Part shown: positions 1 to 31,700 of the stretch, piece by piece
Layout: each line of letters starts with the position of its first letter
Numbering within the stretch: position 1 is the first letter of the stretch
Assembly: GCA_000708835.1 (NCBI GenBank)
Contig: DF237056.1
Coordinates: 124,001-188,000, forward strand
Length of the DNA: 64,000 bases
DNA from: Klebsormidium nitens
Taxonomy: Eukaryota > Plantae > Klebsormidiophyceae
Direction: 5' to 3'
Program-made: the position numbers and the translations under genes
Notes under the pieces: generated by a model
Database searches by the model: none
The model's input: only the letters and a program-made list of their open reading frames with translations
What the model was told of the DNA's origin: nothing

Positions 1-1756
1 CGGTCAGCCTGCTCAACCCAGGTCCTGCATGCATCTGATTGTGATCCCTTGCTTGCACTTGGTGGATCCTTCGCTAACTAATTGTCCTCCTCTTACACTT
101 TTCCGACCGCTGTATGCTTTTCACTACCCTTCTTTTCTCAGACTATCCTTCTTCGGTGCATTTTGTTATCAGCCAACACCAAGCAGATTCCTGAAGCATG
201 CTACTAAACGATGGCTCATTATCAGCGTAACCCTCTTTCTCTCCTCTCGAGGATCTCCGCTTAATACTTTGAGGATTGCTGTCGCAACCAGCTTTGCATA
301 GAAGCGCACTGAACCACGTCATCATGGGAAGCACAGACTGCTTATATTGAACCTTTCGGAACCCAACAACAACGTCAGAGCCAGAGTTCCTAGTGTTCAG
401 TGACTCCACCAACTCACCAACAGCAGGACATTATGAGCAGATGGCATGTCATTGTCCAACTCTCAGAGGCAAGGCAATAAAACAAGGCGGGGATCGATGA
501 CGGGAGGCTGCTCCTTTGAGAGTACCACCACCAACCATCTCAAACCTCAAATGCATGTGAGTGATGCACACCAAGGGGTGCAAAAAAAGCTGAAAGAAAA
601 CCGAGCGATATATGGCAGACATGCACGCGTAGAGCTTCAGAGAACGGATTAAACCAATATCATCGCTCCGAAGAGCTCGGCGCCCACTGAGAACCAGCGG
701 GCGGGTTTGTATGTGTATGATCTCATCAGCAGCCAACGAACGTGCAAACGAGGCGCTTGCATTTCCAATTTGCTTGGACAACCCTGGAGAACCCTAAATG
801 CTTGTAACCTGGAAACGTGCTGAAAATCTGGGGATATAAACCAGAGGCAGAGCTTACCGAGCAGAAGGCCAAGATTCTTAAGGCTCCTTATATATTGCAA
901 GTCATTGAGGTAATATAAAAGTTTCGCTCTTTCGCTGTGCTTATGGTTGTGACAAAATCTGCAGCCAGCTTGCTGAGAGAAACATTCCCAAGATAGAACT
1001 ACAAAGTGGAAGCTTCATGCAAGTGTAAGCAGGCCACCTCAAAGGGACAAGCAACTTCTGGTCAAGCAACACATGACCTGGTTAAGCAACTGTGTCTTCA
1101 ACTCCCATCACAGAAGACCAGGAAAAGAATGCTGCACAGCAAGTTTTGCAATTCTGCCCTAATTCATCCCAGAACACAGGTTCTCCTCCAGCAAGAGCTC
1201 TGACAGCAAGAGCTCTGACAGCAATGCAAAGACGGACAGAGAAACCTTGTAAGACCCACAGCAAGCTTCAGCAAGCTTCAGATAGTACCACTGAGGATCT
1301 AAGCATGCTGCTACACTAAAGCAATCGACTGGTAGCTAAAACCAAGCGAACCTAAGAGCTGGTTCCGCAAAAGCAAGCCATCATGCAATTCGCAACAACA
1401 GCGGCACTTAGAAGCATCAAGTTCAACCAAAAACGAACAATTGTGTGTACAAGGTCTTGGCGGCCAAACAGACTTCCTGTCAGTGATAGCTGCATGGCAA
1501 GTGCCTGGGATTCAAACTTCATAGCACAGCAGCCCACCAAAGTGCGTAAATAACCTTCCCAAGATACGGGCCTCCCTCTGACATTGAAAAAGGAACAGCA
1601 TTGCGGTTGGAATGCAGACCAATCTGCTTCATGTGCATGCTGCAAGCGCCATGTTGACCAATCACAACTTGGAACCATTGCCGTTGCAGATCCAAACAGG
1701 TGCTTAGTACTTATTTGCAGAACCAGATGAGCTCAAAAATCAGCCAAAATTCTTAC

Positions 1757-1959
1757 CAGTCCTCCTGCCGGCTTGACGTGTCGACCACAAGTACAGGCAT
1801 GCGCTCCGGCAGCAGATCAGGTGGCAACCTGGTGAGAGGAAGGACTGGGGGAACTTGCTCGGGCCACTGGTCTGACGCAGCCACAGTGATCAGTGAGGTC
1901 TTCCCCGTCTTTGAGTCCCCAACCAGAACCACGCGGACATGGTCCCGCTGCTGCCCCAT
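1757..1959 (-). CDS. MIRO: Mitochondrial Rho GTPase (Miro), first coding exon only
   Basis: ATG at 1959. MGQQRDHVRVVLVGDSKTGKTSLITVAASDQWPEQVPPVLPLTRLPPDLLPERMPVLVVDTSSRQED has a P-loop (GxxxxGKT) and the Miro-typical VPPVLP..LP and VDTSSR motifs. It ends at a TG|gtaaga donor (1756). No downstream exon could be assigned inside the window. Confidence 0.85.
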
Positions 1960-2399
1960 GCTTGATGCTCTCTCGAAGAAACAAAGGCAAACGCTCGGAA
2001 CACCTTCTTAAGCTGTGCAGACCTTGCAGCGTCTACAGCAGGAGGGTAGCCTCTCTCGACGTGTCTAGTGCATCAAAGCCCCCACGTAGCCGCCTCTTCA
2101 AGAAATAGATCCGAGTAGAGCAAGCGCCATTGCAAATCCGCTGAGGGGATGCATGTCAATGTCATTGTCATTTCAGATTTGGCTGTGGTGGCGAAACCCC
2201 AAATTGCTTTGCATCTAGGATGCGACCAAAAAGTGCAAACCGTCACCATTACCGTCTGCTGCGGCCCCAGTGCCCCGGTGCCCGGCGAACCACATCCAAC
2301 AGTAATGACTTGCCAAGAGTCCCCGGGCCAGGATGTCCGCACGGTAATGGTAAGATGTTGAGTTGGGCGGCCGCGATAATACTAATAATACCTTGACTA

Positions 2400-2877
2400 G
2401 GAATACTTGCACCCATTATCGGCCACCTTCAGCTTGACAACAAGTTTTCGATTTCGACTCAAGTTTCAGTATGCATGTGATACATGGATAGAAAGCTTGT
2501 CGAATCCTCTTTCCATCCATATAAAACACTCTTGCACGAAATGACGTCTTCCACATGTTGTATAAGATCACAGATTTTGACCGGATTTTTTACCATGTTC
2601 CTATTATCGGCCACCTGCATAAGCTAGCCAAATGCAGCATACTTGGTCAAATTGAGTCCGGTTTTTAACTGGAGGTAGATCTTGACCCTGCCCTCCTAAG
2701 TACCAAGTTTGGTCGCCAACAAGCAAGATCTTCAACCCTTACTGAAGACCCGTTTCCGCCTGCTAAAGTGGCGAATGTTCGGCCGCGAACCGAGTTTCGA
2801 TCGATCGAGACTCGGTTTCCATACGAGTTCGGGGTGGCCGGAAATAGGAGCTGGCCGATATTGGGTGCAAGTATTCC
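2400..2877. mobile_element. Non-autonomous TIR element (MITE), ~480 bp
   Basis: 26-bp inverted termini with 1 mismatch: GGAATACTTGCACCCATTATCGGCCA (2400-2425) versus the reverse complement of 2852-2877, GGAATACTTGCACCCAATATCGGCCA. Internal copies of the TATCGGCCA motif. No ORF; no clean TSD. Confidence 0.75.
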
Positions 2878-2941
2878 GGTACGGTTGTAGGATAGGTAGT
2901 TGGGTTGATCGGCCAGCCATGCAGCACTCATGACTCTATTC

Positions 2942-3314
2942 CAGTGATCGTGGCGAAAACAAATCCTGAATACACTAATAGGACCTCTCGGACATTAATT
3001 GGCGAAAATGGCACTAAAATTCCAAGCGGCTATTATGGCCGGGCGCCTGTCCCGGGTACTTTATTTCTGTCCCGACCTTATTCTAACCACTTCTCAGAAG
3101 TTCAACCTGACAAAGCACATTCGCAGGCGTTTCGACTGGTTTCAATCAGGGTTGAGAGCTGTCAAAGTCGGTGAAGGCGCCCGAGCGGGTAAAAAGTTGC
3201 CTGGTAGCCTAGGCTTTTTCGCCAGGCCGGCGAAATTCCCTTGCTAGACACTAAATGGCGAAAAGCTGGCGAAAATCAAATTGGCGAAATTAATTAGTTT
3301 CGCCACGAACATTG
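2942..3314. mobile_element. hAT-type MITE, 373 bp, with 8-bp target-site duplication
   Basis: Exact TSD CTCTATTC at 2934-2941 and 3315-3322. Imperfect TIRs CAGTGATCGTGGCGAAA / CAATGTTCGTGGCGAAA. Multiple subterminal GGCGAAA motifs. An 8-bp TSD with CA..TG ends is the established hAT signature. Confidence 0.9.
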
Positions 3315-3540
3315 CTCTATTCCCATGAGGCTGTAGTGCGATCTAGGTAGGTACCTATCTCGGTTGTATAGGGGGCGTGTCTGCATGAGGGGGCGCCTAA
3401 ATCGAGCTACCGCTTCCGTTCGAAGAATGTCCCATCTGGGTATTTAATCGTATAGAAAACTGTAGGCTCGTGGCTTCATCTACCTTCTGTAGCACTCTTT
3501 GTATCCTTTGAAGCTGAGGTTTCCTTCAACACGTTGAAAC

Positions 3541-6500
3541 ATGAGGCACCTTGAGAAGCTGGGACGTCTCGCATTGCGTCATGCCCCTCGAGACGGCGTT
3601 CACGGACCGCAGGCATGTGCTACGCTGCGTGTTGAGTCTTGGGACCAGGCAACAGAGATCAGTGCGGAAGAACTGACGAGTAATCAGTTTGGGCTGCACG
3701 ATTGCCCTGATGAATGTGGAAATGCAGGATATCCAGCGGGTACCTTGCATGATGAATGCTCTACCTCGAGCAGATGCCAAGGTGCTGTTCAAGCCACTCG
3801 CCGAGACGGAGCAACTAATCACCACCATTCATCGCCATCGGTAAACAGCTGCCTTGTAGGTTCGTTGCACCTCCGCCGGCCTCTCCGAAGCCCTTCTATT
3901 CCAGATGGCCATTTGTGGCAACAGACCCCTGCTCGAGGCTTTGCTGCGTCAGCGCTTCCAACAGAGACTATGGAAACGGTTTTTCGAGAGCGGTATGTTC
4001 CTCCGGGCGGTTTCCTAGCGCTCAATAACCTCCGCGACAATCCGGGGGCAAAGAAAGAGGTGAGGAGTTGGAGCAGCGGTGTGCTTCTTGAATCATCTGC
4101 ATAAAGAAATAAAATTTCAATTGTCGTACAAAAATTTGCTTCAAACTTTATGCTCTACGGACACTTTTTAGGTATGCCGTCGCAATTGGATTCGACTGCC
4201 TGCAGGAATGTTTCCAGGAGATGAGCAGTTGTTGGTGTCGTAGGTCTTATATCCTTCATAGAAGGTTCCCTCCACCAATGCTGGTGTCGCTCATTTCTCA
4301 GATCTTGCAAGGTGTGAGCTTCTGAGGTAGATGCTTGTTTCAGCAGACACGAGACAGAAGAAGTTGATGATGGCAAGTCCTTCTCGGCTGAACGTTACTT
4401 GCATGTTGTCCATGCGAACGCCTCTCATCATTTGCCTACAACCACCACTTGTGCTGGCTGTGAAGCACTCACTGATTCTGGCTATCTTTCTATGTGTGCT
4501 GGCAGAAAAAGCGGTTAGGGCGAGGGACGGGGTCAGGCCTGGGGAAAACAAGCGGACGGGGTCACAAAGGCCAGAAGGCACGAGCAGGCAAGGAGCAAGC
4601 CAGAATTCCAACCAGAATGCGACGAATTTTGCCTGTAATCTTTTTGGCTTGGCTGTCTAGCTTTGACAATCTCCGAAACACGAGCGCACATGCCTTGATA
4701 AGGCGAGCGAGAAAGTCTCAAGACTCTATCAGGGCGGAAGTGCAGGTTGCGGTGAGCTTTTGACAATTGGATAAAGTTGGGTCAGTTCGTTACATGTTAT
4801 AACCAGGTCCTTTTGAACAATAAAGCTCATCGTTGAGTTGGACCTCCCTACACTTGCGCTTTGCAATCTCAAAGGTTGCTTCAATCGAATGAAAGCAGAT
4901 CCTGAGGGGGCAATAGGGGCAGTACAGTGGCATCCTCTGGATGCGATCAAGGATAGTATGGAGATGACCAGTACCTGAAACAGGGCTTGAAACCGGTTGA
5001 GAGCCATGTCGGAGCAAGCCTTTCCCTTTTGCCTGCAATTATCTGACTCATTGTCCCGTGCAGGTAGGAAACCACGTGCCGGTTTCGAGGGCGGTCAGAC
5101 CCCCTTGCGGCTGAGCATTCCAAAGAGAGGGTTCCACAATCCGTAAGTGCCCTCCCTCGCTGTTGTCTGCGGCAAGCAGCTCTCTTGCTTCGAATTCTCC
5201 ACAGCTGCTACTAAATCATGGTGTTCTTAGATTAGGATTGAGCGACCCTGAGGGTGCATGATGCTTGCTGCGTCACTTACATTGTTTCAAGTATCCATGC
5301 TTCGTGAGTCTCCCGTTGATGCGGGAGTTTGATGCAGAAGATGTGAAAATGCGAGAAGTGAACGTCCACTACTAGCAGCTCTTTTTACAGCCAACGGTTG
5401 AAGTGACAGAGCGGTATGGGCATGGATGGTGGTTGTAGAGTATCTGTCAGCAACAAAACCGAATATTGAGTCACCATCTTCGACCCTACCTTGTGAAAGA
5501 ACCAGCTTCTTTTTGTCAAGCAGCTGACACACATAGTGGAATGCAAGGCCTGGTGACTGACTGTCATCTTGAATTCAGGTTTTCCTTGGATTTCCAAGTG
5601 CTAAATTTAAACCGGTTGACCGACTACATTGAAAAGGGCAAGATCGACCCCAACAACCTCATCACCATGAAGGTCCGTCAATCTGGTCTGATTATATTAC
5701 CTTTGCGTTCAACGTACCTGCAACCCTTGTCTGAGTGCAGATGCGGATTCTATTCCAAACTTGAGTTGGCTATACGGAATTGCCTGCCTGGAAAGCGCAA
5801 GTTTTTCGTGGTTTTGCAATCGGCCTGCCTGAATCTGAAACCAGATTGAAAACCTCAGGTGTTTGGCGGATGATCCCGTTGCGACTTGGGTGGCCGCATT
5901 TTTCCGTAGAGACATACTCACTGTATTTTCTCCGACCAGACTCTGAAAGATGCGGGTGCGATCGGAAAGGCGATGCGGGACGGCGTAAAATTATTGGGGC
6001 GGGGCAGCGACGAGTTCAAGCACCCCATCAAGATCGAGGTAAGCTTCGAACACTAGTACTTCAAACATTGTGAGTGCTCCGTAGCGCAAGTTTTGATGTC
6101 GTTCTTAATGGGCATCACGCGAGATCAGGTGTAATGTCGTCAAAGGCACGCTTTCAGGCCGTTTGGCACAGTCCTGCCTTGGTGGCAGGAATTTCTGAAT
6201 GGACAGCGTCTGATTACGGGTGAAGGTTAAGTCTACCTCTGTTTGTTTGCCGGAAGGCCCTACAGAATACTTTGGCCCTTCTGAGGTCGAGAGGCGAAAA
6301 GGTCAATACTGCTCCTTCGTCAACAGGTCAAACCTGGTTTCGAAAAGCGCGACCCAGTAACACGTTGTCACATGAATCAGGATTCTTCCGTTTCTTTGGT
6401 GGGCATGGGCGTTGAAATTCTCGCGCAACCTCCCTCTAAGATCGGACACATCCTAGAGCAGGAACTTTGTGGTCCTCACGGCTTGTGCTCGCTCCCGTTT

Positions 6501-7185
6501 GCAGGTGACTCGAGTGTCGGAACAAGCACGGAAGACGATCGAAGCTGCCGGGGGCACAGTTACGACGGTTTATTACAACAAGCTGGGCCTGCGGGCTCTG
6601 TACAAGGTAAGCACTGGGCAGTCTAGCTCTGCCAAGTCAGATCGTCGTACCCAGCAGGCCTGCGTCCGTGCTCTTTCTTCGATCGGTCGGACGCCTTTCT
6701 ATGACGTCACGAAGTAGTTGTAAGCTTTTGGCCTGTGGTGCTGGTGATAAGAACCGGCAGTGTCGCTGGCACGGGGTAGATGTAGGCATTTTGAACCCTT
6801 CTCGAGCTCTGCCGGAGACTGCCGTCAAGCGGACGAGTATGTGAGCAGCTGGACTGGACTCGGGGCAAATGTTTTAGCCTTGGAAACCTGCTGAACTAAT
6901 TTCAAAGTACTGTTTGAGACAGACATTTCGCTTTGATGTAGTGTTCGCTGCTGTGTGAGCAGACTTGCACCACTTCGCGGCCATCCATTATTCACCTTTA
7001 CATCCTGGGGTTTGAAGATTGAACTTGTTGCCCTTGTGCAGCCGGAATGGTTCATCAAGAAGGGCCGAATGATACCAAGGCCAGCACGACCACCTCCAAA
7101 GATGAGAGGCAAGACTGACACGATTGGCCGCCTTCCTGCACCTACCACGCCTTTGGAGCTGGAAGGTGAAGGATCAGTTCCTTGA
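3541..7185 (+). CDS. MRPL15: Mitochondrial 50S ribosomal protein uL15 (7 exons, ~372 aa)
   Basis: Exons 3541-4059, 4506-4587, 5064-5142, 5579-5672, 5940-6038, 6505-6606, 7042-7185 join in frame. Motifs: [54 protein letters not shown]. The C-terminus [20 protein letters not shown]...IGRLPAP is of the plant mitochondrial type. Intron 2 is GC-AG. The start codon is less certain than the rest. Confidence 0.92.
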
Positions 7186-7994
7186 GTTTTGAACGGAAGA
7201 TACGGATTATACTAGGAAGCTTGTGTCGAAGCGGGCTTTCGGTTTCAGCCGCAAAAAGTAGCAAAGAGGAAGTGGTGTCCGCAGTGCTTCAGGGTCCAAA
7301 TCAGGGGGCTAAAACGGGAGTGTACCGGTTTGACTTGTCTGCGCAAATGAGGCTCTTACATTGAATAAGTGCTGCCATTCCTTCCGATACGAAAAGCAAC
7401 TTGGACAGATCAAACTCATTTGTTTAACTGGAAGGTCACCTCCAGACTCTGTGTCCCTTAAGGCCCGTTTGAAGGCTTGTGTATGGGGGTTGACGTTTGC
7501 AATTGGCCCCAGATTCCACCAGCCAGATTGAGATCCTACTATGAGCCGCCCCTGCTAAGGTCTGCAAGGTGTTCAACCAATTTCAAAGATTGAGATACTT
7601 CTGCCACCACACTCACGATTCTCGTAACTTTCTGTCATCTCAACATGTAATGGTCCGTGCAACTAGATTCGACGATGTAGGAGTTGTTCACGACTTGTGC
7701 TTGAAGTTGATTATTGTATCAACTCCATTTATCTTGTCTCATATGGTCAATAGAAGCTATATAGCAAATCCATTTGATGCCGTATGGCGGCCGCCTGCAT
7801 GTCATGCACGTACTTCAATGTAAGGGGCGTGCGTGCATGTAATCAATTCATAACCTGGTGCATGTACCGTCACGTGCAATTGGCGCACGAGAAGTCAAAA
7901 GTACGCTGGAGGGCCCTCGAGTCCCCGGCCCCCTTCCCCTATGAGAATTGCGGGTTCAATCAAACTTGCCTATTTAGAGCTCGAGCTGCTAGAC

Positions 7995-8170
7995 TCAGAA
8001 GCGGCCGCGGCTGAAAGCATGGGCGGGCCGCACCGACCGTCCCGGGCCCGTCCGATCATTCGTACTAATCATTTGCGGCGGCCGCGGCCCCGCCATGGGC
8101 CCGGGCCGCCACGTGGGCGGGGCCGCGCCTGCGGCATGATGATGCCAGTCCCTAGCGCGGCCGCCCTATG
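7995..8170. repeat. GC-rich palindrome island
   Basis: Near-pure G/C tract with three GCGGCCGC sites. It shares GCGGCCGCGGCCCC (8078-8091) with 52957-52970. Confidence 0.5.
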
Positions 8171-8742
8171 TTGGCCGTTGCTATCAATCGGACGGCTCAC
8201 GATGACACCGAAGTTGGAGAGTGTGAATGCGTACTTCATTCTGTTCTCTCCGCGGCCCGGTCGACCTTCTTGCGATCGCAACCGTTGGATGATGATGTTG
8301 TGCGCGGGTGGAAGCCAGTGAACTTGAGCCAAGCAGAGACCGTCCATTCAGCAACTCAGACCGTCGATACTCGAGCTGAAAGCATCGAACGGAACAGATG
8401 AGGCAGTTCTGAAGAGGTTTGAATCTCAGCTTTGCGAGATCGAGCTTCTCATGTTTTTCGCGCTCAAAAAATTGCTCCATCTTCAAGTTCAAACTTCGCC
8501 TTCAAAATCAAGCTGCACAGGAGGGCGCTTGCAAGCTTCATCTCTGTCAAAAACAGAAGAGAGGACGCTAGATGAGCGCCTGTCGTTATCCACTGAACTT
8601 TTGCTAAGAGCAAATCAAGCTAAGAGCAATTGTGATACAGTCAATTCAAAGGGAGCACTTAGAGCCAGCATCCATTCCGCCAGAACTATTTTCCAACATA
8701 AAGGAGCGCCCATCTGTCTGTTTGCATTCCTGAGGCCTAAGC

Positions 8743-11127
8743 ATGGTAAGCGTCTTTGCTTTGCTTGCAGTCACAGGGCTTGGCATGGCACTATATAGAT
8801 CCTGACGAGTAGGCTTCTACTGTCCTTTCAACAACGTGGCTTAGGTGCCCTCAATTGGGACTCTTCAGGTCTTTTGCCTAGTCCATTTGCATCGCTGTCA
8901 TATTCTGTTCACTCATTCAAGTCTTCACAGTATTGTAAATTGAAGATCACGGCTACTGCTACTCGTAACGGTTGCTGCATCCATTCGTCACAAGTTGAGG
9001 TGCCGCATCCACAGAGATGCTTCTGACTGGTCAGAAGACAGAAGCAGCAAGCAGTTGATATCGAGGATTTGTCTGCGGTACTTCTGTGCATAGTATTGCT
9101 CACGCCCTTTCGTAAACAGACGCTCCTAGTGTCTGGATGCATTGGGTTGTTCGTTCCTCTTGCTTGCAGTCGATTGCAGTGCGGCTTTGATTAGCATATC
9201 GCTAGTCTTTTAGAAGAAGGTAACTCCAACTGAAGGTGCATTGCGAGTAGTGAATAGCTGCTGAGAATGGACAGCCAGGGGGAGCCTGATTGGCTAAAAG
9301 CACTTATCCAATGGAGAATGCTCCTCAATAATACCGCAAATAATCTGCAGCTTAGTGGCGCAGGAATGACAGGTGCTATTTCAAAATTGACTGCTCAATC
9401 TGCTGTGTCTGCCTGCTTCAAGCTGCACATGACCATAATCAACGTCTTCCCTACTTTCTGCACCTTATAGCTCGTGAGCATGTTAGCTCACCTCTTATCG
9501 AGATGGTTACCTCACCTCTCTATATAGCAAGAGATGAGCTAACCATCTCATGGGCTCAATAGTATTCAGCAGGAGGATGGTGATCTACTTTTAAGCAACA
9601 TTTTTTTATTCTTGTGCATCCAACTGCTTCAGTCAAAGCATTTTGCTAGTCACCTTTGATGGATTCTACACTGGCTTACAAGCAGGGGCTCTTCATCATT
9701 TTACCGGGGTTACCAAAGCTCAGTTGCTAGACAGCGCTCCTAAGATTGGCACCGTAATCTTCAGACCTGGGTTGCTATCTGACCATATTTACCATATTGT
9801 GCAGTCGGGTAAAGGAGCAAAGGGTCTGTTGACCGGTGGCAAGCCAGGAGCAGACGACAAGTCAAAGGATAAGAAGAAGCCGCAGTCCCGTTCCTCAAAA
9901 GCAGGGCTGCAGGTGAGCTGTTTGCGGGCTTTGACTTTTGAGATAGCATCCACAAAAGCAAACACCATGCAAACACCAGCCTCATTTCAAACTGAAGAAT
10001 TCTGTTTATTTCATTCCCAACCATGAGAGCATCAGTCAGAAGAGAGGTAAATAAGCAACATGATTACATCAACGGCTTGGTCATGCAGTCACTGTGCCAG
10101 ATTTACCGCCCAGGATGTTGCCCGGGGAAAGCGCATTTTCAAGATCGCTCTCAGAGTTGCCCTGTTAAATTCTGTTTGGCATGGTCTGCTTATTCTGCTT
10201 TCCTCTTAGGAACATCTTATGGACACTGGTTGTACTTGAGTTCTCAACACCCTTTCTATTGGAGTGAGCAGCCTCGTTGAGCTGGTTTCAGAGTAGTTGT
10301 CTGTGCTCTCAAGCTGTAGAAGTAGTATGGATCTTTTGGAATTTTCCTGTCTGCCCTTGGAGTCCGTCCGCACCTGATGGTGCATATACACCGCTCCAGA
10401 AACTACAGCAAGTTTTTTAACAGGATGCGAGTCTTGTCTTCATGAGTACGTCAGCTGGAATACCTGTCTCTTCTGACAGTTCCCGGTTGGAAGGATCCAC
10501 AGACTACTGAAGAGCAGAGTGTCGGCAAATGGCCGTGTGGGTGCCACGGCAGCGGTCTACAGCGCTGCTATTCTGGAATATCTGACGGCTGAGGTGCTCG
10601 AGCTGGCTGGGAACGCATCCAAGGATCTCAAGGTATGCTAAGCATCGAACCAGTCTCTCGTCTAGCTGGCAGTATCAGCTGCTTGTGTGGCCTCGTAGTG
10701 ATGCTTGCAAGGTTGTCAGTCCGTCACTACTGTCCTTGACTGTATCCTTCTGCATTCATATGTTATGTGCTTGCGGCCTCGGCAGTATTTCCCTTAACTA
10801 GCAATAGGGTAAAGTATCGCACTCCAATCCAATGTTGATGACCCAAAGAATATTATTCTGTCTCTTCAGTGCTTTCTCTAGTGTTGATCTGGTGTTGATC
10901 TCAGCAGTTATTTGATTTGCACTCTTCTCCATCCTCCTGAAGAAAGCTACGCTGATGTGGTCTTCTTGCCTCCCCTACAGGTGAAGCGTATCACGCCCCG
11001 GCATTTGCAGCTGGCCATCAGAGGAGACGAGGAGCTGGACACGCTCATCAAGGGGACCATTGCAGGGGGTGGTGTCATTCCTCACATTCACAAGTCCCTC
11101 ATCAACAAATCCAACAAGAAGGAGTAG
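8743..11127 (+). CDS. H2A.Z: Histone variant H2A.Z (~136 aa)
   Basis: Exons 9805-9912 ([15 protein letters not shown]...SRSSKAGLQ), 10480-10632 ([51 protein letters not shown]) and 10981-11127 ([40 protein letters not shown]). The Met must come from an upstream exon; the best candidate is ATG|gtaagc at 8743-8745 (inferred). Confidence 0.95.
9500..9549. repeat. Intronic fold-back (21-bp stem, 8-nt loop)
   Basis: GAGATGGTTACCTCACCTCTC (9500-9520) pairs 18/21 with AAGAGATGAGCTAACCATCTC (9529-9549). A partial extra arm copy lies at 9482-9496. Confidence 0.6.
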
Positions 11128-13191
11128 GGTAGCCGCACTGCTGAAAAACCTAATCTGCAGATCAGTGCGCTGGTTCGCACCTGATTGGTGCTGATCCGTA
11201 CTTTTAAACGACTGGTCACAAGGTAGTGCTTTTAGTAGCTCAACAGATGATAATGCTTTCTGTAACTAGAAGCTCACCTCTAAGGCGAAGTGGATGGTAT
11301 AGGGAATGTGGTAAACAGCCAGATTTTAGGCAGCCAGGAGTGGTCAAGCGACGACGTACTTGACTGCATGCTTGCGAGCTGCTCCTCAACTCTACTTTCT
11401 TTGCGAGTGTCTTTCAACAGCAAGTTGAAGGGCCACATTGATCAGCACCTGACGGAGTTATCCTCTTTCAACCGACTTCCCGTTGGAGCACCAAGCTCCC
11501 AAATGTACTTTCAGGTCAGCTTGTTGACTCGCATATTGCTTATAGCAAGACACCAAGCATGGGATTGTGCAAGTCGAATTCAGGTCCGGTTTTACTTGAT
11601 TGTGTGGGATAGCCTGGTTGAAGTTTCTGTTGGTCGTGTCTTGATGGATGGATCCAAGGTCCATGTTTTGTGCACAAGCTTGGATAAACATCAGTTGACA
11701 GTGGCACGTGCAGTTGGCAGTTGTGCGTTTCAAATTGGTCTTTTACATTGAAGGTTAGGTTGAGCAATCAAGCGATCTGCTGGCTAGAAGCATTCAAGTT
11801 GGGACAAGCAGATTTCCGGGGACCATTGTTTTGTGAAAGGCGCAACATTAAGTGAGAATATGCGTACGTTACTATCAATATGTGCATGATTTTACTAAAA
11901 TCTGGAGCCATCAAATTTTTCATATAGTAGCGACCACTTGTGACTCGGCTCCACAACTCAACAAGAGAGCTTCGGGTTGCATATAAGCCTATCAAAATGC
12001 GATCAGGCAAATGGTCTGTAATGATCGTGTTGTATGTGTCGAATCTCGATCGTCGTTGAAAAACGGGAGAATGCATGGTCATCCATCAACACACGTGCAT
12101 ATGTACTGTGCGAGAAGACAGTGCAGAAAGAAAATGATGCAATTGTGCTTTTGAAACGCACGCTGCAGTACCAACTTTCAATGGCCACGATTCGTTCTGA
12201 GCGAGCGACGAGCGTGTATTTGATAGGATGCTGCTCTGCTGCTGGCATGTTCGGAATTCAGGCCGCACTTGAATGAGCAAGCACAATTCCGAACAATGGT
12301 TCAGCATGCACTGCCAAGCACTAGCCTCAAGGACCGTACGCGCGAGCATGGCGGACCGGCACGTGACTCGAATAAGGTCTGAAGCGCGGCGCTGGCAGCC
12401 TGTCACTAACAGTAACTTCGGCAACGGCCGCTAATTGCGGGATTTGTGCTGACTGGCTGAGTCCTGACCCACACAGGAGCGCGGTCCACTCGCGATTTGG
12501 TAATTGCCTTTCAACAGCACCATAGCCTATGAAAATACACCTGCATGCAGACCATGACTTGGAGTCTGTACATGAGTGTGATTTGGTGGCTGCTATAGCC
12601 TACCTCGGGTACCGGTACCTACTGACCCCGCTGCGGACTCATCTCATTCTGCTTTTGCATGCACAGCTTTCTGGCGTCTCGCACCCGGTATGCTAAACCG
12701 AGCTCCAGAAAGTCAGATACACAGCTTTGTGTTCGCCCGGTAGATCAACGACGGTGGAGCCGGTTTCTAGCTGCATGCAGCACTGTTGGCACACACGAGT
12801 GAGGTTTCCAAGTGGCGTGCAGCAGAACAGGGATGAGGCAAGCGAACCAGCTGGACCCGACACGAAGCTAGATTTTGTGGATTTCTTTTTGAAAGCCCTA
12901 CGTGTCGTACTCCCATTGCAGGGTTGACTGACAAGTCCAAAACTTTTCACAAATGGCCTCCAGCTCGCAGTCAAACCTGTGACTGACTTGGCCTGCTCCC
13001 AAAGGAAAGGCAGCTCGCCTCACAGCTTGCTTGCCAGAGCCGACAATCCCCTAGTTTCCCGCAGGTCGCCAATTGTCTCACAAAAATTTTCTCGTCTACA
13101 ATTGAACGCCTGTGAAAGCGCCTTCAAGTACCAAATAAGCAATCAAGAACCTTCAGGGCTCAACCCGAGTACCAGGACCAATCAGCTAGCC

Positions 13192-16100
13192 ATGGCTCAG
13201 AGGAACAAGTCCGGCAATGAGGCTGCCGCTAAGGCTGGCGCGGACTCCGCTGCCAAGATCGCTGACCGCACTGCGAGGGAGCAGGGTAAGAACCAGAAGG
13301 ATGCGTCCATCACTGAGGTGACCAAGGGTGGGGCCACCGTGCACACTACGGTGCAGCAGAACCAGGAGAGCGATCCCTACTGCCCCAGGGTCGATGAGAC
13401 CACGGTAAGTGTGACGTTGTTGTTTGGCAATTGTGCGCTGGAGCTGTTCTGGTTAACATTGTGCCATAGAGAGTGTCCAAAAGCTGTCGCCGTTCTAGAC
13501 TGAGCTGCATTTAGGAATGGGAAGAGGCTGTTGTTCAAGTATGTGTGTAGTTTTCTTTCAGGTTGTCCTTGTGAAATTTCACCTCTCTGACCATACTATG
13601 ATGACATGACTGGTCGGCAGTGCATGGAAGAGTCAAATGCGCCCTTCTTTGACTTCAGATCATCTGAGCAAGAAGCTTCAGCATTCTGACCGAGTTTGGA
13701 AGGTCTTGCTCTTCATTGAGCAAGAGAAGTTTCTTGGAGTGGCACTGCATGCAGATGGCTTCAAGCAGTGAAGTTCAGTGTGTGTCCGCGCCATTATTTG
13801 GAGATGCCATATGTACTCTGCGGGAAGCGATTAAACCTTGTCCTACAACCATCTTTGCACTATTTGTCTTTGTTCTAAAACAGCATTTCGTAAACTGGAT
13901 TCTCTGAGTCTGTTTGAACTTTACTGCAGACAGGTCGACAGGGTCAGGGACTGAGGCAGCTGCTGTCACTTCACTTGCAATACTTAGATCTAGTGTACAC
14001 GCCATGTACTGCACCCGCCATGTATTGCACTAAAATTCCAAGGGTTCTTGAAACTCTTAAAAGCAACAATGAAGAATTGCGAACGTAGACTGACATTGAG
14101 GCGAAGTAGAGACTTTAGATCGAGCATATTCGACCATTCTGGTAGATGGTACTAATTTGGTTACTTTTCTTGGATGCAGCCCCAGGAGTTTGAGACCAAA
14201 GTGCAGGTCATTCGCAAGACCCCTCAGATGAAGACCGTTGAGAAGACCGAGATGGTCAAGCGTCTCAGCCACGAGGAGAAGACCACGACCGTGCCTCGTA
14301 CCAAGGTTATCACTGAGGAGCGGACATCGATCACAAAGCACCCTGTTGTGAAGGAGGTGCAGAAGACGAGGACCATTGACGTGCACAGGTAATGCGAGAT
14401 ATGCATGCAGAGTACTAAACCTGACAACCATGCGAAGACATTATTATCACGCAAAGCGGTCGGAGCTTGTCTGGTGGAGACAGGTGTGCAGTCCGATGTT
14501 CAACATGATTGGTTATGACCATCTTGCTTTTCGGTTGACTCGTAGCGTGGTCGAAGTTCGGTATTTCCTCTCCAAACGAGAGGGGTGGTAGATAAGTAGG
14601 TGTGGTACAGTTGCTGGTTTCTTAGCACAACCGACTCGAATCCCTGTCTCAATGGTTTCCGATTCCGATTTCTATTTTCTTCTTGCAGGGTGATCGAGGA
14701 GGAGAAGGAGATCACCGAGACGGTTGACGTTGTCGAGCAGGTGTGTTAACCGAACAGTCTGTCGCCTTATAAATTAGCCCGTATATAGAGTTAGAAATGA
14801 CCTTTTTAGTTGTTTCTCTTTAGCGTACATCTCAGCATCCTCTACGTGGTAATTCGAAGTCTCACTAATAGACTGTCCACACAGTTCGTCGTAATCTGAG
14901 GTCCACTAGAAGTTTGCCGATACAGTTCGTGCAACGCCAGCTGAAGGATACAAATTTGCATACTCTCAAGTTTGACACAAATGTGTTGACGCCGTTTCGG
15001 CTAGTTCGACCGTGAACCTGAACTACAGCAAAGAAATGGCCACTAGGTTTTCCTCTTTCGATGTCCAATTTGATTTGAGCGTGTTGAGTCTCCGGTTTTT
15101 CAGGTGCGTGAGCGGAAGGTTGAGAAGGTGCCCAAGGTTATCTACGAGGAGAAGGAAACGTGGATCACCAAGCCGGTCGTCAGGCAGGTTGAGAAGAAGA
15201 GAACTATCAAGGTGCCCAGGTAAGCAAACGATGTGTCTCAGAAGAGCTTGCATCGTGTCGTCACCTGTTGATTTCAAATCCCGCAATGTTCTTAGCAGCC
15301 CGCATAACTATTGGCAGGTCATCTAGTTTGAAAGCTTCTGAGGCTTCTCGGGCCACGTTGGGGAATGAGAGATCCTTCCCACATTTGTAACGTCAGTACT
15401 AGTTTTAACGTGCAACTGTGCATGGTTAGCTCTTTGGTGAATTGTCACATCTTATTTCTTGAGATACATATCTGCTTATCCAAGTCAATCGGTTCATGTG
15501 TAGGGTTATCACTGAGAAGAAGGAAGAAGCGTACACCGACTACCAGACCGATGAGGTGGGTTAACGTTTCTCAAGTAGTTTGCAACGAAGCCGACCCGAT
15601 GGTTTCCTCAATTGTCAGCCATTCCTGCATCGAGACTGCGTAACACTTCATATGATCTGCTTACTCGTTGTAGAAGTTCACAAAATTCGTTTCTTCGACG
15701 TTGTAACGAGAGTGCAGCTGTGAGGCGTAATGCAACACAAGAGAGAGATTTCAAGTAGACTGAGATTTGTCACTAACCCATGATCTTTGAACTGTTTGGC
15801 AGGTCGAGGAGAAGAAGATCGAGAAGGTGCCCAGAGTTGTTACAGAGCAGGTCAAGCAGACCATGTCTGTGCCGGTCGTGACAGAGGTGCCCGTAACCAA
15901 GAAGGTGGAGGTGCCCACTGGAGAGTGAGTCGCGAATCTTCTGTTCTGCCAGATGGTAGATAGATTCTTTCGTGCTTGTCATTTCGTCAGGTTTTCTTGT
16001 TGATTCAGGGAGAAAAGATGGGTATCTGGTAATCGTATGTAGTTTTATGTTACGGATATTCTTTTTCTGTCGTGAATGTGTCGATTCTTTTGTACTCCAA

Positions 16101-16372
16101 ATGGCGGTTTGTCTTCTTTTGTCGTGAATATGTCGATCCTTTTCTATTTTAAATGGCGGGCATGTGAAATTCAATATGTCTTCGTTTTTGTTCTCAGGTA
16201 CTGCGAGGAGGTTGTGTCTCACGACCACGCCCCTGCTGCCCTTGGCCCGGCTGTCGTTCCCGAGAAGGTGACGTCCATCAGCGACAGCAAGCTGAAGACT
16301 TTGGAGAAGGATACTGAGGCTCCCGCTGAGGAGCCAAGGAGAGGGTTGTTGGGCAGATTGATTGGGGCATAG
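13192..16372 (+). CDS. Articulin/alveolin (epiplastin)-like Val/Glu/Lys/Thr-rich repeat protein, 312 aa
   Basis: Exons 13192-13404, 14180-14388, 14689-14740, 15104-15219, 15504-15555, 15803-15924, 16198-16372 total 939 nt, all in frame with GT-AG junctions. The central domain has repeated VEKVP, IEKVP, PVV, VPV and KVEVP motifs. The gene model is solid; the family assignment rests on composition and motif resemblance. Confidence 0.8.
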
Positions 16373-17274
16373 ATATGATTGGACGAAAGTTGTGGGGAAG
16401 CGGAAAAGGTGTGAGGATTTGCTAACAGAAGTGTACCGTCTCGATTGGAGATGTCACCTTTTGGTGTAACACGTAGACGCTCGCTGTAACATGTTGTAAA
16501 CTTGCCATAGGAACAGTCCGATTTTGGAAAGACGAAATAAGAACACGCTCGCTTGTCTTACAAACCCACTGTTGCGGTTTTTTAGTGTCTCAACATCTTT
16601 TCAATCCATATTTACGAATATCTTACCTTCTCAAACTCTCGTGACACTCCAAATCACATCAAGTGTGCACAGGATTCGTTTTCTCGACATCATTTTTCAA
16701 TCTAAACAGAAAAGTAAAGTGCAAATAGTGTACTTAACCTGATATTCATGTATGTGCATTGTAAACTATTTCATATAACTTCTATCGCACATGGTTGTGA
16801 TGTGGTTGATAATATAACGGCAACGGATGATATTATTAATGAGAAAGTTGCAAGCTGACACCCTCCTCAAATACAATATTGAAGTCGAAAAAATATACGA
16901 AACCTATCATAGGTAACTGGAATAATATTTATATCATTGACCGATATTGCACACCCTTAATATATAACGTACATACTGACACTTTCGAAAATGTATTGAG
17001 CAAAGAAGGAATAATTGCTTGAATGGAACATACTGTTTGTAAGTTTCCTGAGGATCCCTTCGAGGGGTATTCCTCAAATATGGCTGAAGTGAAACATGTA
17101 CATGAGTTCGCCCACCTGCCACGACACCGATCACCAGATGTGTAAGCGCGGAATTGTGGAAGTTCATCACACCTGTCTGGCGCTTGTAAACTCGTCCCCT
17201 GAAGCGCCTCGCAACCGACCCATCGGCCTTCGATACATGCTACAGTGCCTTGCAAGTTCAATTGCAGAGGCTAG

Positions 17275-17400
17275 GCCCCCGCGGCAGCTCGAGCGGATCG
17301 CGACCCGGGGGCCCGCAGGCCGGGCTGGCCGGACGAGCGCGGCCGGGCCGGCCGCGCCAAAGTTTGCGGCAGGCGGACGCGCCGCCGCGCTGCGGCTACG
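17275..17400. repeat. GC-rich palindrome island
   Basis: 21-bp palindrome GCGCGGCCGG-G-CCGGCCGCGC (17337-17357). ATCGCGACCCG (17297-17307) is shared with 52887-52897. Confidence 0.5.
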
Positions 17401-19115
17401 ATGTGCCACTTCAAACTTGAAAGCCAGCATGTTGAACTCGCAGCTATAGCTTTCGAACCACGCCCGGGCAGAGAGTACTGCTTTGGAACTAGGGAACGTG
17501 AAAAAATGTGAAACCTGGGTCATGCGTTGCGCGTGCGAGAATTCCGGTAATGGTCCCATCAACAACCTCAATTTTACTTAGGGATGTACAAGGTACAGTC
17601 TGTTACACGTAGTGGGAGTACAAGCTATGCCAATCATTGGCACCGCAAATGTCGGTGAGTTTGCAATCCATGTTTTGTCCCGGTCGATGGGCTACCTTGC
17701 GCCAGAGTCCCAGTGTCTAATCTACCGAGATTGTGGGTATTATAGAATTTCCGCTCAAATTCACGTACCGACATCCAAGACTCCCGGTATGAAATTCTTG
17801 GTGTACACCCACAAATCCACTTGAAATCTATGTACCCAGCCTCAATTATAAAAAGAATCAAAGAAATCGTCAAGAACAGACGAATCGATGGTCCGCAATT
17901 CGAGTTTTCTGACATCCGCACCATCCAACGGCCCGCATCCAAAAACAACTATTAATCTCAGATTTTACAGCCCGAAGGGTGTATCCATAGGATTTTTCCT
18001 ATTTATCGTCAAATTCACTTGTATATTGCCATTTGGGTTGATCGTCCTTTAACATCCATAAGGGCCTAGCTAATTGAAACGCGGAATACCGCGTAGACCT
18101 GTTGCCAGTTGGTACCGTATACGGGGCAAAATCATGGGCAGATACCGTACCAGGGTACCTCAAGTCAGGGTTTTGGCAATAATATTGCCTTGTTTTCGCC
18201 TGGGCGAGTTGGGGGCCTGCTATGCATAAGGGGTCCGCCTTATCGTCCGGTCGTGCCCGGGAGTAGTATAGGGGACAGCCCCGGGAGCCCTGGTGGCCGG
18301 TCCCGACTTGCAGTTATTAGAGGACGTTCCCGGTTCGATACTCTTTAGATGTCCCGGCGTGTCAAGCTGTGATTCGATTCAGACCTCCTGCTCGTAGAGG
18401 GATAGAGAAGCCTCAACTTAACCGTCGGCCTGACTGAATTTGGTCAATGGATGTCAAAGGGGTGCGCTACTGTAACTGGCTCGGTTCACGTGCCCCGGTT
18501 CCGATCCGTCGATGAACTCACGCGTACGGCTGCATGTCGGTGCTTGGCGAGAAGCGATCCCCTTGCGCGCCCTCCGACCCCTTCCTAACCGATTCTCTGC
18601 CGAAAAGGCCACAACCTGGAAATGGGGCTCCTTTTAGTAGACAGGAAGCCTACTTTTTCAGTTGCAATAAGATGATCATTTACAAGCAGTAAGTACACAT
18701 ACGTGCCTCTTAACTTGAAAGTAGAAGCGCCTCCCCGACGTCGCGATTTGTTCTGGCATTGAGTACTGGTCTTTTTCATACGGCCATGCAGAAAAGATGA
18801 TGCATCTCATCTGCTCAAAATGGAGATTCAGAATACGCCTCCTTTCAATGCTGTGGCTAGCATTGCTGAGTGCAATTGCAGAGCATTTCCACCTTCTTAG
18901 CTGCACAAAAGCCATCGTTTCAAGATTGCCCATACTTGGACTCTGATAGACTTTCGCACTGAACAAGAGGCACCTTGACACTGCTCATGGCTTCTGAACA
19001 GCAGCTGACCTTTGGATAGTCTTCTGAGCTGAGGTTATCTGACAGTGAAAGGGCTCATTTCAAGCAACCACTGCTTCAACCAAGCATGGTTAATCACACG
19101 GTCATCTCTGTGCAG

Positions 19116-28754: not shown

Positions 28755-31700
28755 ATGGCTACATCCCAAGTGCCAAAAGACCCCAAGCTCTATGAGCTGC
28801 TAGGAGTTGACCGGTCCGCTTCTGAAGAGGAGATCAAGCTTGCATATGGCGAGAAGGCCATTCAGGTGGGAATTTGTTCCTGAAAGCTTTGTGATTTTGT
28901 GTTTGGTAGCTCTCTTTGATTTAATGGATGGTAGACCTTTTCTTCCCTTTCTGCAGGTCACAATGTAAGAGCTGGCCTTCATTGACTGACAATAAGCCAT
29001 CACTATTGGACTGCATCAGTGCCAAAAAGCTGTTCTGCATGCACAAGCTGTGCTGACGGGTTGTGATACGCATTTGAGATTTCATTTTCCAATTCCAAGC
29101 CTGCTGTACGTTGAGTTTTCCTCAAATGCCAACATTTTTCCATTGGCAGACAACTTCATACCACCACCTGTGTAACTTGATAACCAAACTCATGAAAGAA
29201 ACGAAGCTTGGAAGTTTTGGTGCCTTTTTATTACGAGGTTTTGACCTCCTCAATTGACTTTCTCCCTTGTCCTATGCAACTTCATTTGCAGATGAAGTGT
29301 CAGTGGCTCCACGAGTGGTTCATATGCATGCACCCTTCCAATTCCCTCTGAGTTGTGTCCTGTATTACATTGAACTTTCAACCAACCAAGCTCAGAAATC
29401 AAATTTTTTTGTTGTCAAAGGTGAAAGTCACGCGAATGCAACTTGATGCTTTTCCTCTGCTTCATTAGGACCTTAGCAAATATCTAATGAGTGCCGTACA
29501 CACGGTGACCTGTGCTGTCGTGTCATTCCTAAACAACAGAAGGTCAAACCCAGAGCGCCTATTTTGAGAGCAAGAGCTTATTCCACACAATTCATTGATG
29601 ACGTAGTTGCCCAGTATTATGAAGGTGGTGACATCTCTGGTGACATCTGTGACATCGTTTCCCTGCAGCTGCAAGAAAGGATGGCCAACGTCTTTGGTCC
29701 CCGCACCGCCGACCCTGCCGCTCTCGAGTTTGAGCGCCTCCAGTTGCAACAATTGAGCGCAGCCCTCGAGGTGCTGACTGACCCCCAGCAGCGCTTGGCA
29801 TACGACGTCACCTTTCCCCCTAGTTACGGAAAGGAAGCAGAGGAGAAGACGGTTCAAATCCCAGAGGGGCCTCCCAAGGCACAGAATGAGCAAGCGCAGG
29901 CTCTGGCATCTGCAGCCATTGCGTTTGCTAAGCTGCTGGGCAAAGGCAAGCTGTGAGTTTGCCATGACACATCCAGCCCTGACTTATATTTGAGAGTGTT
30001 TGGTTTTACTTTACGTAGTCTTCAGATCTGTCTATAGTCATTCCTGTCACATCATAAGTTGCTGGCTATGCTTTCGCAGGCCGGATTAAGGGGTTCATGA
30101 ACCAACTGGTGAGGACACGAGAGTTTGACAATGAAAGACGTACTTCGGCAAAACATTTTGGCCACTTGTTGTGTTGAGTTCAAGGCTGCTGATCATCTGT
30201 AGGCCTGATGTGGTTAGCCAAGGAGCTACTGTTGACTGTTGTCAATACTTGTGAGGAGGAAAGAACTCCTTTTTGCGCCTGGTTACAATCCGGATGGCAA
30301 CAAGTTCTCAGAGGAAAGCGAAGAAAATTGCTTGTAGCAATCTCGATGACGACAAGCTCCGATGCTTATCAAGGAAGAGTTTTAGCGAGCCTGTCACTTC
30401 TGCTTGACAGCTTTGAGGACTATGTTGGACAATTGGCGACGTTGGCCGCTATCATCTTCGAAACAGGGGGTGACATTGGAGGCGACGCGAAGCCTGTCAT
30501 TAAGGAGCTGAATCAGGTCGGCTATCTGCCTGAGCCCTTCCTGCCTTGTGTTTCACCATGTTTCCTCAGTTTATTGTGTATATGACAGAAGAGTTGCCCT
30601 AGTGCTGTGTTTGCATTGTTGAAAGGTTCCTCAAACAATGAAAGAGTTCGGAGGGAAGCAGGTGCGGTGAAGACATGAATCGTACTCTATCGATGTTTCG
30701 CAAGCAATCCGATACTTTTTCTAGAGACAGGTCGTCCAGCTATGCAGATTCCATGAGTAGTTCACAAAGCTTTCCCTTGACCAACCAAAGGACTGCAACT
30801 GAAGAGGCTTCTCTCATTAAGCCCTGGCCTCTTTCTTCAGGAACGTATCGAGACTCTGGCCGAAATCCTCAAGCTCAAGATTCAGCCGTACGTGACTGGA
30901 GACAAAGAGGGATTCCGCCAAGCCGTTCGAGAAGAGGCAGAGGTTCTTCAACAAACGCCATTTGGAGTGCCGATGATGCACCTGATCGGGTGAGCAATCT
31001 ATTTATTGGCAAAAGCAGTCTCTCTTTCGCTAAAGACGTGTTGCTCTTGCCGCTGTTTTGGTCATTCGGCTTTGTCCTACAACTTTTGTCCTAATGTCTT
31101 TTTTTCGGATACAGGAGGTGCAAACAGGGTCCTCAATTGCGAGTGGGCACGAGCTTAAGCATTTGTGGACAACACCGTTTCCTGGTCTTTCAATTCTCCA
31201 GAGGTTTGTCATGTGCTGTGTTTGTGCGAGCTTCATCCACTGCGAAGTATACAGATCTGGGCCCAGATTTAGAACGGCTACTCTAAGGGCTGTCGATGCT
31301 CCGTTTCCAGGTACGCATACGAGCGGGCCGCCAATCCGTATTTGGGCCATGTCGTCAGCGAGTGGTTCACGAGGATGGGGCACAAGCTGTCGGTCTTGGT
31401 GAGTCTTCGACAAGTGTTCTCGCATACCTCGGCAAATGATAAGGTAGATTGCTGTGCAAACTCTTCTGAAATGGGTTCTGCTTTAAAGGTACTGCTAGAT
31501 GGCTGCCAGATTTTAGACGGCCTCGTCCAATCGTTGGAATTCGAAGCGATCCGGCTTTGATTGCCTTTGCGAGGCTCTCGAATTTAGACCTGCGAAGTTT
31601 CTGGTGCTGCGTCCGATTGGGTTTTGCTACTTGACGTTTTCTGGTCGTCTGGTTGCCCTTCGTCACGTGGCAAGCTTTCACCCCAGTGTCGTTAAACCTG

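Follow-up and report, generated by a model that had tools for sequence, protein, structure and literature searches.

The stretch of DNA analysed here (the window) comprises 64,000 nucleotides of contig DF237056.1 of the streptophyte alga Klebsormidium nitens and carries, at window positions 13192–16372 of the forward strand, a gene of seven exons, KFL_001070210. Joining the exons gives a 939-nt open reading frame (ORF) of 312 amino acids with GT..AG at all intron borders, and the predicted product is identical letter for letter (312/312 residues) to the K. nitens protein GAQ82315.1 (KFL_001070210; P0075 in our sequence set), which is annotated as a ‘hypothetical protein’. The green-lineage source assumed in a preliminary description of this DNA, made from the letters alone, was therefore correct. 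KFL_001070210 is a real gene, abundantly transcribed and translated, and belongs to an old streptophyte family, as yet unnamed, with members in Klebsormidium, mosses and liverworts; the core of its product is a domain of fixed length and position-specific conservation, not a loose low-complexity region.

The 5′ untranslated region (UTR) occupies at least positions 13007–13191, as spliced RNA contigs start at 13007 (run X13) and 13054 (run X6) and the ATG lies at 13192. Exon 1 (13192–13404) encodes the A/T/K/Q-rich head of the protein (amino acids 1–71), with a predicted helix at residues 6–30 and the cysteine C64 of a conserved ‘YCP’ motif. The core begins with exon 2 (14180–14388, amino acids 72–141), which runs from an invariant PxEFET to ..VHR and holds the first strand of a predicted ribbon, and continues through three short exons: exon 3 (14689–14740, 52 nt, amino acids 142–158), homologous to exon 5 and with its joints present in RNA contigs; exon 4 (15104–15219, 116 nt, amino acids 159–197), the first half of a clade-specific 56-amino acid duplicate, with a predicted hairpin turn at residues 168–172; and exon 5 (15504–15555, 52 nt, amino acids 198–214), the second half of the duplicate, equal to exon 3 in size and intron phases and likewise with RNA-confirmed joints. 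Exon 6 (15803–15924, amino acids 215–255) completes the core up to an invariant VPTG and would supply the second strand, predicted to pair with residues 87–125. Exon 7 (16198–16372) encodes a conserved ‘YCE’ (C257), a disordered tail, a K-segment-like amphipathic helix (RRGLLGRLIGA, amino acids 302–312) and the stop codon, and is followed by a 3′ UTR that starts at 16373 and extends beyond 16600, with RNA contigs covering 16198–16600.

RNA contigs of four runs, each from a different study, carry every one of the six exon joints at the modelled positions, the joint between exons 1 and 2 (13403/14179) being present in 4 runs, and a single contig of 1,370 nt covers the transcript from 13007 to past 16600. 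A lack of expression of the spliced model, which the preliminary description had named as grounds for abandoning its reading, was thus not observed. Word depth was 143–19,000 in exons and 2–73 in intron contigs, placing exons 100–1000× above introns. Since spliced contigs come only from RNA, runs of uncertain library type (labelled ‘RNA?’) were counted as RNA. In run X6 the contig carries 26 letters ahead of position 13054 that are unmatched to the window; an alternative 5′ end, an adapter or a strain difference are possible sources.

Core domain, family and exon-pair duplication

The core (amino acids 72–255, 184 residues) consists of V 19.0%, E 17.4%, K 14.7%, T 14.1%, R 6.5%, P 6.0% and I 6.0%; G and A are nearly absent (0.5% each). 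Its composition is unrelated to that of the head (residues 1–71) and of the A/E/L/P-rich tail (residues 256–312), in agreement with the earlier portrayal of a core of about 190 amino acids, rich in V, E, K, T and I, between unrelated ends. The motifs that had been called recurring are all present (VEKVP at residue 164, IEKVP at 220, PVV at 126, 182 and 238, VPV at 237 and 243, KVEVP at 248); VEKVP, IEKVP and KVEVP, though, occur only once each as exact 5-mers, so that what recurs is the pattern and not the words. Self-comparison of the core gave 30% identity at both lag 28 (z = 7.3) and lag 56 (z = 6.8), where shuffled sequences reached 12%, with weaker peaks at lags 14 (z = 2.9) and 42, and when the core is set in rows of 14 residues the columns align. 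The core is a domain of 14-residue sub-repeats bracketed by PxEFET and VPTGxYCE.

Searched exhaustively by phmmer against 1.84 billion representative sequences, exon 2 (69 residues) gave 20 matches, one of which (P0019) was rejected as a spurious repeat match. A profile built from five full-length matches found 44 proteins, and a search seeded with one member, P0015, found 18 additional family proteins. A word search with exon 2, in which candidates were confined to 38–121 amino acids, gave one exon-sized fragment from a congener (P0001); Pfam searches with single exon translations gave nothing meaningful. Named members come from K. nitens (KFL_001070210 and its paralog KFL_002550070), K. subtile, Riccia fluitans, R. 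sorocarpa, Marchantia paleacea and Ceratodon purpureus (five genes), all annotated as hypothetical, and the remaining members are metatranscriptome or Logan proteins; ‘hypothetical protein’ is so far the only annotation the family has received. No named vascular-plant or chlorophyte member turned up, a provisional result in that the exhaustive search used only the 69 residues of exon 2.

An alignment of 48 sequences contains 18 invariant and 30 nearly invariant columns, with PxEFETxVxVI at the start and VPTGxYCE at the end of the core; invariant residues in KFL_001070210 include E74, E76, T77, V79, P86 and M88 near the first bracket and P252, T253, G254 and E258 near the second. Core length is exactly 128 amino acids in 40/40 non-long members and 184 in 8/8 long members of this alignment, and in a larger set 54 sequences have 130 and 21 have 186 residues from motif to motif. 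The 128-residue core is that of mosses, liverworts and the K. nitens paralog, and the 184-residue core that of the KFL_001070210 clade. KFL_001070210 fits the family in its bracket motifs, its invariant columns, its core of 128 + 56 amino acids and both intron positions flanking the core. A genomic contig of a congener (L001) shares exons 2–6 at 63–82% amino acid identity, with a nonsynonymous to synonymous substitution ratio (dN/dS) of 0.17 over 177 codons (dS about 0.9), and shows no detectable similarity in the introns. On this distribution, the domain would date to, or before, the split between Klebsormidiophyceae and the land-plant line.

Two cysteines bracket the core, the C64 site being Cys in 40/48 members and the C257 site in 47/48. 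We considered a disulfide ‘clasp’ joining C64 to C257 but did not adopt it: the first site is Ala in 7/48 members, and the structural model does not bring the two cysteines face to face.

The additional 56 amino acids of the long core correspond exactly to exons 4 and 5 (116 + 52 nt), which match the last 116 nt of exon 2 and the 52-nt exon 3, respectively, with identical intron phases; exon 4, the homologue of the end of exon 2, is not present in any 128-residue core. The 56 amino acids are a duplicate of the preceding exon pair. A tree of the cores resolved three clades (long-core Klebsormidium, the paralog clade and bryophytes) and is unrooted, so that the duplication is undatable relative to land plants. 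One intron before the core and another at PTG|xYCE are common to KFL_001070210, KFL_002550070 and R1flu_023906 of Riccia fluitans (L003), in which the entire 129-amino acid core lies in one exon.

Predicted beta-ribbon

AlphaFold2 modelling of KFL_001070210 with the family alignment returned a head helix at residues 6–30, two strands at 81–167 and 173–262 forming one long hairpin, and a C-terminal helix at 305–311, with a predicted local distance difference test (pLDDT) score of 77–89 in the core. For the paralog KFL_002550070, strands were placed at residues 68–126 and 130–190, with pLDDT 92–95. The domain is accordingly predicted to fold as a very long two-stranded antiparallel beta-ribbon, and the extended ribbon that the preliminary description had suggested looking for by AlphaFold is what the models contain. 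The turn of the short core at ..HR|VV, which had been anticipated from the 14-residue rows, was borne out at residues 127–129 of the paralog (P0091), equivalent to 141–143 of KFL_001070210. The turn of the long core falls at the homologous junction ..PK|VI (residues 168–172), the duplication having shifted it in the models by 28 residues.

The sums of paired residue numbers are 256 in the paralog and 340 in KFL_001070210, and they coincide once paralog positions are mapped by adding 14 before and 70 after the insertion. The base of the ribbon would therefore keep its pairing partners, and the old tip would now pair with its own duplicate. At about 0.33 nm per residue the predicted rods measure about 20 nm (short core) and 29–30 nm (long core); the duplication would add 28 residue pairs and extend the rod from about 20 to about 30 nm with its base register unchanged. 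Two paralogs of one alga that differ by exactly one 56-residue module would amount to a natural experiment on rod length. In the paralog gene (DF237204.1, L002:3001–6045), an intron follows ..HR exactly at the predicted hairpin tip, giving one exon per strand.

Core prolines fall in one phase of the strand alternation in all 841 of 841 cases across 78 sequences (612/612 in short and 229/229 in long cores). In KFL_001070210 itself prolines are distributed 11/0 by phase (p = 0.001), while valines lean 25/10 toward the opposite phase. Because the pair sums are even, the prolines of both strands belong to a single class of sites. Negative design at the edges of beta-sheets is an established principle, and regularly spaced prolines may keep the rod from aggregating edge to edge, provided that they occupy outward-facing, non-hydrogen-bonded sites. 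The hydrophobic moment at 180 degrees over the whole domain was not significant (z ≤ 1.5), so the ribbon would not be simply amphipathic. A complex prediction with two copies of residues 60–265, run without alignment or controls, scored 0.00 and speaks neither for nor against self-association.

Comparisons with solved and predicted structures gave no relatives. A profile search of Protein Data Bank (PDB) sequences had 0 matches at E ≤ 1; the ESM Atlas held no feature or structure neighbour at a useful score (best 0.78; template modelling (TM) score ≤ 0.19), and the best TM score in an atlas shape search was 0.31. The VIA wide search peaked at Z = 5.0, to pseudopilins, which is within noise. 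Foldseek against PDB yielded only non-significant long-hairpin look-alikes (best E = 5.7e-3), the top rows being the phi29 tail knob and the pore stems of aerolysin, lysenin and anthrax PA. These share with the KFL_001070210 core the shape of a very long two-stranded hairpin and nothing else: the matches are non-significant (E ≥ 5.7e-3, TM ≤ 0.14), the hairpins of those proteins are stable only inside oligomeric barrels, and the core carries far too much charge to serve as a membrane stem.

Likeness to epiplastins

We know of no epiplast described in Klebsormidium, a walled organism. The preliminary description had likened the product to epiplastins, a group that includes the alveolins, articulins and epiplasmins of alveolates, euglenids, cryptophytes and glaucophytes, for which Goodenough et al. 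2018 (PMC6212826) give V 25 ± 7%, I 9 ± 4%, V+I 33 ± 7%, charged residues 35 ± 6%, G 0.4%, A 1%, S 1% and T 3 ± 2%, with a net charge that is neutral to negative. Compared with these values, the KFL_001070210 core fits in charged residues (40.8%), G, A and S (1.6%), is low in V+I (25%) and lies far outside the range in T (14.1%), with a net charge of +3; it agrees with the epiplastin composition in most of these values. Moss and liverwort cores come nearer (V+I 30.5%, T 9.1%, net charge −4.8). The AlphaFold2 strands at 81–167 and 173–262 are in line with the beta-strand, non-helical character expected of epiplastins, whereas the tandem valine–proline repeats, rich in VPV modules, that mark articulins are lacking: the 312 amino acids contain two VPV and no VYV, the repeat period is 14/28/56 residues, and core prolines occur about once per 14 residues.

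KFL_001070210 and epiplastins have further traits in common, namely a medial V/I/E/K/R-rich domain almost devoid of G and A, acid–base dyads, unrelated head and tail regions, and a predicted twisted beta-ribbon such as AlphaFold-Multimer gives for alveolin domains (PMC12465100). On such grounds KFL_001070210 might be a true epiplastin, kin to articulins and alveolins or their functional equivalent, self-assembling into a sub-membrane skeleton in naked zoospores or desiccating cells. The composition (41% of core residues charged, G and A 0.5% each, S 1.6%, many E–K dyads flanked by V or I), the V+I content of 30.5% and negative net charge of bryophyte members, the similarity of the predicted ribbon to the alveolin models and the very high abundance of the transcript all favour this. 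We nonetheless judge it improbable. The Pfam IMCp domain (PF12314) was unmatched at E ≤ 10 in KFL_001070210, in its core (72–255), in any of 48 members and in the exon pieces, and no alveolin or articulin appeared in the exhaustive exon-2 phmmer search, which found only this family, or among 8000 word-sharing candidates. T-richness (14% against 3 ± 2%) and V+I of 25% also separate KFL_001070210 from epiplastins, as do an exact core length with position-specific motifs and a 14-residue periodicity, where epiplastin domains vary in length, and a predicted hairpin that is intramolecular. Its associations are with stress (dehydrin segments in relatives and a salt-specific protein listing, both described below) and not with the cell cortex, and green algae yielded no epiplastin candidates (Goodenough et al., PMC6212826).

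The proposed kinship with articulins and alveolins is therefore not upheld, and of the two origins put forward, convergence or ancient retention, the findings agree with the former: the likeness to alveolins and articulins appears to be convergent, not inherited, and ‘epiplastin-like by convergence’ is the best label. The same source describes ‘epiplastin-like’ single-copy proteins in Basidiomycota, insects, Naegleria and Caulobacter (PMC6212826) that resemble KFL_001070210 in having an epiplastin composition without an epiplast; they have no assigned function, and convergence or transfer is their proposed origin. Those proteins, recovered in BLAST searches with a cryptophyte domain, are rich in VPV, whereas the present family is unreported in that work and is set apart by bracket motifs of its own and by dehydrin tails. 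An ‘epiplastin-like’ composition can thus arise outside the known protist lineages, which bears on homology versus convergence of such proteins in general. The further statement that proteins of this kind are not a recognised component of walled streptophyte cells fails for a family that is present in Klebsormidium, mosses and liverworts and includes members with dehydrin segments.

Dehydrin segments, salt stress and proposed role

Dehydrins, like other late embryogenesis abundant (LEA) proteins, are treated as fully disordered. The Pfam Dehydrin family (PF00257, LEA group 2) matched 28/48 family members at E ≤ 10, in their tails, and P0015 scored above the curated cut-off (35.1 against 30.6 bits). 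Taking as a dehydrin any protein with at least one K segment (EKKGIMDKIKEKLPG-like) or a Pfam match, the paralog KFL_002550070 (P0091) and P0015 qualify and KFL_001070210 does not. In moss and liverwort members a run of serines precedes acidic residues, and the C-terminal end is basic and amphipathic; the C-terminal RRGLLGRLIGA of KFL_001070210, a predicted helix, aligns with the K-like ends of its relatives. At amino acid 372 of KFL_002550070 lies exactly the K segment reported for the K. nitens SK2 dehydrin GAQ85800.1 (Strimbeck 2025, PMC11763121), for which no ordered core was described. From the identity of this segment alone, we take GAQ85800.1 to be KFL_002550070. In the same study, BLASTp searches with algal dehydrins gave no land-plant relatives. 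The heads of several moss members, among them P0038, P0033 and P0063, contain DRGLF or DRGLL followed by a His run, which recalls the dehydrin F segment; that segment is absent from bryophytes according to Strimbeck 2025 (PMC11763121).

Dehydrin-type segments also bear on the idea of a secreted, proline/valine-rich structural protein of the cell wall, for which the PVV, VPV and KVP motifs and a core proline content of 6% might be cited. Among relatives, the serine run and the K-like segments are of the kind known from cytosolic dehydrins; in addition, the N-terminus has, on inspection, no hydrophobic signal sequence and instead a charged, alanine-rich predicted helix, and Ser-Pro or Hyp-type motifs are missing. 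A wall protein is accordingly very hard to credit.

In the supplement to a K. nitens proteome study (PMC12752757), both kfl_001070210 and kfl_002550070 are listed on the sheet ‘NaCl specific protein’, that is, among proteins detected only in both salt-treated samples, and OrthoFinder groups the two with the Arabidopsis dehydrins AT2G21490 and AT4G39130. The paralog KFL_002550070 is also an indole-3-acetic acid (IAA)-induced target of KnRAV (PMC10272232). The identifier KFL_001070210 was not found in the main text of any paper. KFL_001070210 thus resembles dehydrins in sharing its core domain with a protein that has a dehydrin K segment, in having relatives with a serine run followed by K segments to which its RRGLLGRL end aligns, and in its salt-specific listing and orthogroup. 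It differs from them in lacking an S segment, a full K segment and any PF00257 match, and in that over half of the protein is a conserved ribbon predicted to be ordered, whereas dehydrins are defined as disordered. The ‘desiccation-stage scaffold’ that had been raised earlier as an alternative points in the right direction.

We consider KFL_001070210 to be probably a salt- or water-stress protein of a streptophyte family in which a predicted beta-ribbon rod, which duplication in its clade would extend from about 20 to about 30 nm, may serve as a charged spacer or shield. Head and tail would both leave the rod at its base, where relatives would present dehydrin S and K segments and KFL_001070210 only the helix of its head and, at the C-terminus, a truncated K-like one. 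Stiff and highly charged, the rod might then hold surfaces apart or shield them in dehydrating cells, with the end helices anchoring it to membranes or other surfaces. A conserved rod of 20–30 nm, as predicted, would give the dehydrin/LEA class an ordered and testable structural element.

Several observations weigh against this proposal. The ribbon is a prediction, and its register was inferred from strand ends and not from coordinates; pLDDT drops to 60–63 at the tip of the long ribbon; the even repeat length contributes to the proline parity, which is not fully independent evidence; and the single-sequence ESM Atlas model of KFL_001070210 is poor (pLDDT 0.58, predicted TM score 0.18). With regard to stress, PF00257 is unmatched at E ≤ 10 in KFL_001070210, the salt-specific listing consists of presence/absence data from two samples per condition, and the transcript is abundant in several studies, so that its expression may be largely constitutive.

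The poor single-sequence model is also what an ordinary disordered shield of the hydrophilin or LEA type, like classical dehydrins, could claim in its favour, the hairpin then being an AlphaFold artefact of a repetitive charged sequence. A grand average of hydropathy (GRAVY) of −0.82, the charge on 41% of core residues, the kinship to dehydrins and the absence of a matching solved fold (Foldseek best E = 5.7e-3, VIA best Z = 5.0) point the same way. Such a shield would, however, leave unexplained the exact core length of 128 or 184 amino acids in 78 sequences from algae to mosses, the proline phase (841/841), the 18 invariant columns, the dN/dS of 0.17, the paralog pLDDT of 92–95 and the agreement in register between two independently run models across the 56-residue insertion, and we regard it as rather unlikely.

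Beyond a proposed role as a charged spacer or shield in stress, we raise, as a speculative and on balance doubtful extension, that the core may be a length-tunable beta-ribbon ‘ruler’, a stiff and mostly polar rod to which each duplication of a 56-residue exon pair adds 28 pairs (about 9 nm). In cells that are drying or under salt shock, rods of about 20 and about 30 nm might stand on membranes by way of K-type helices, or pack into a lattice face to face, and hold membranes and macromolecules apart. If true, this would constitute an independently arisen streptophyte analogue of the alveolin/articulin skeleton and an ordered element within the supposedly shapeless dehydrin family. What is new here is an architecture without S or K segments, the predicted in-register extension of a rod by an exon pair, the proline-phase rule and the salt-specific listing of the protein.

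Three ACGT-core (G-box/ABRE-like, where ABRE is the abscisic acid-responsive element) hexamers lie upstream of the transcript start on the forward strand, at 12092, 12360 and 12900 (12092–12906). They comprise two CACGTG G-boxes and one ABRE-like ACGTGTC, all within 1.1 kb upstream, and are short enough for a chance occurrence to be possible. Elsewhere in the window, ORFs at 3541–4104 (+), 11290–11751 (+) and 29465–29965 (−) showed no Pfam family on scanning. The upstream neighbouring gene kfl_001070200 was not located in the window, the ORF at 11290–11751 having been scanned without a Pfam match; according to the proteome supplement (PMC12752757), its product is a histone H2A (H2A.Z type) and is NaCl-specific too.

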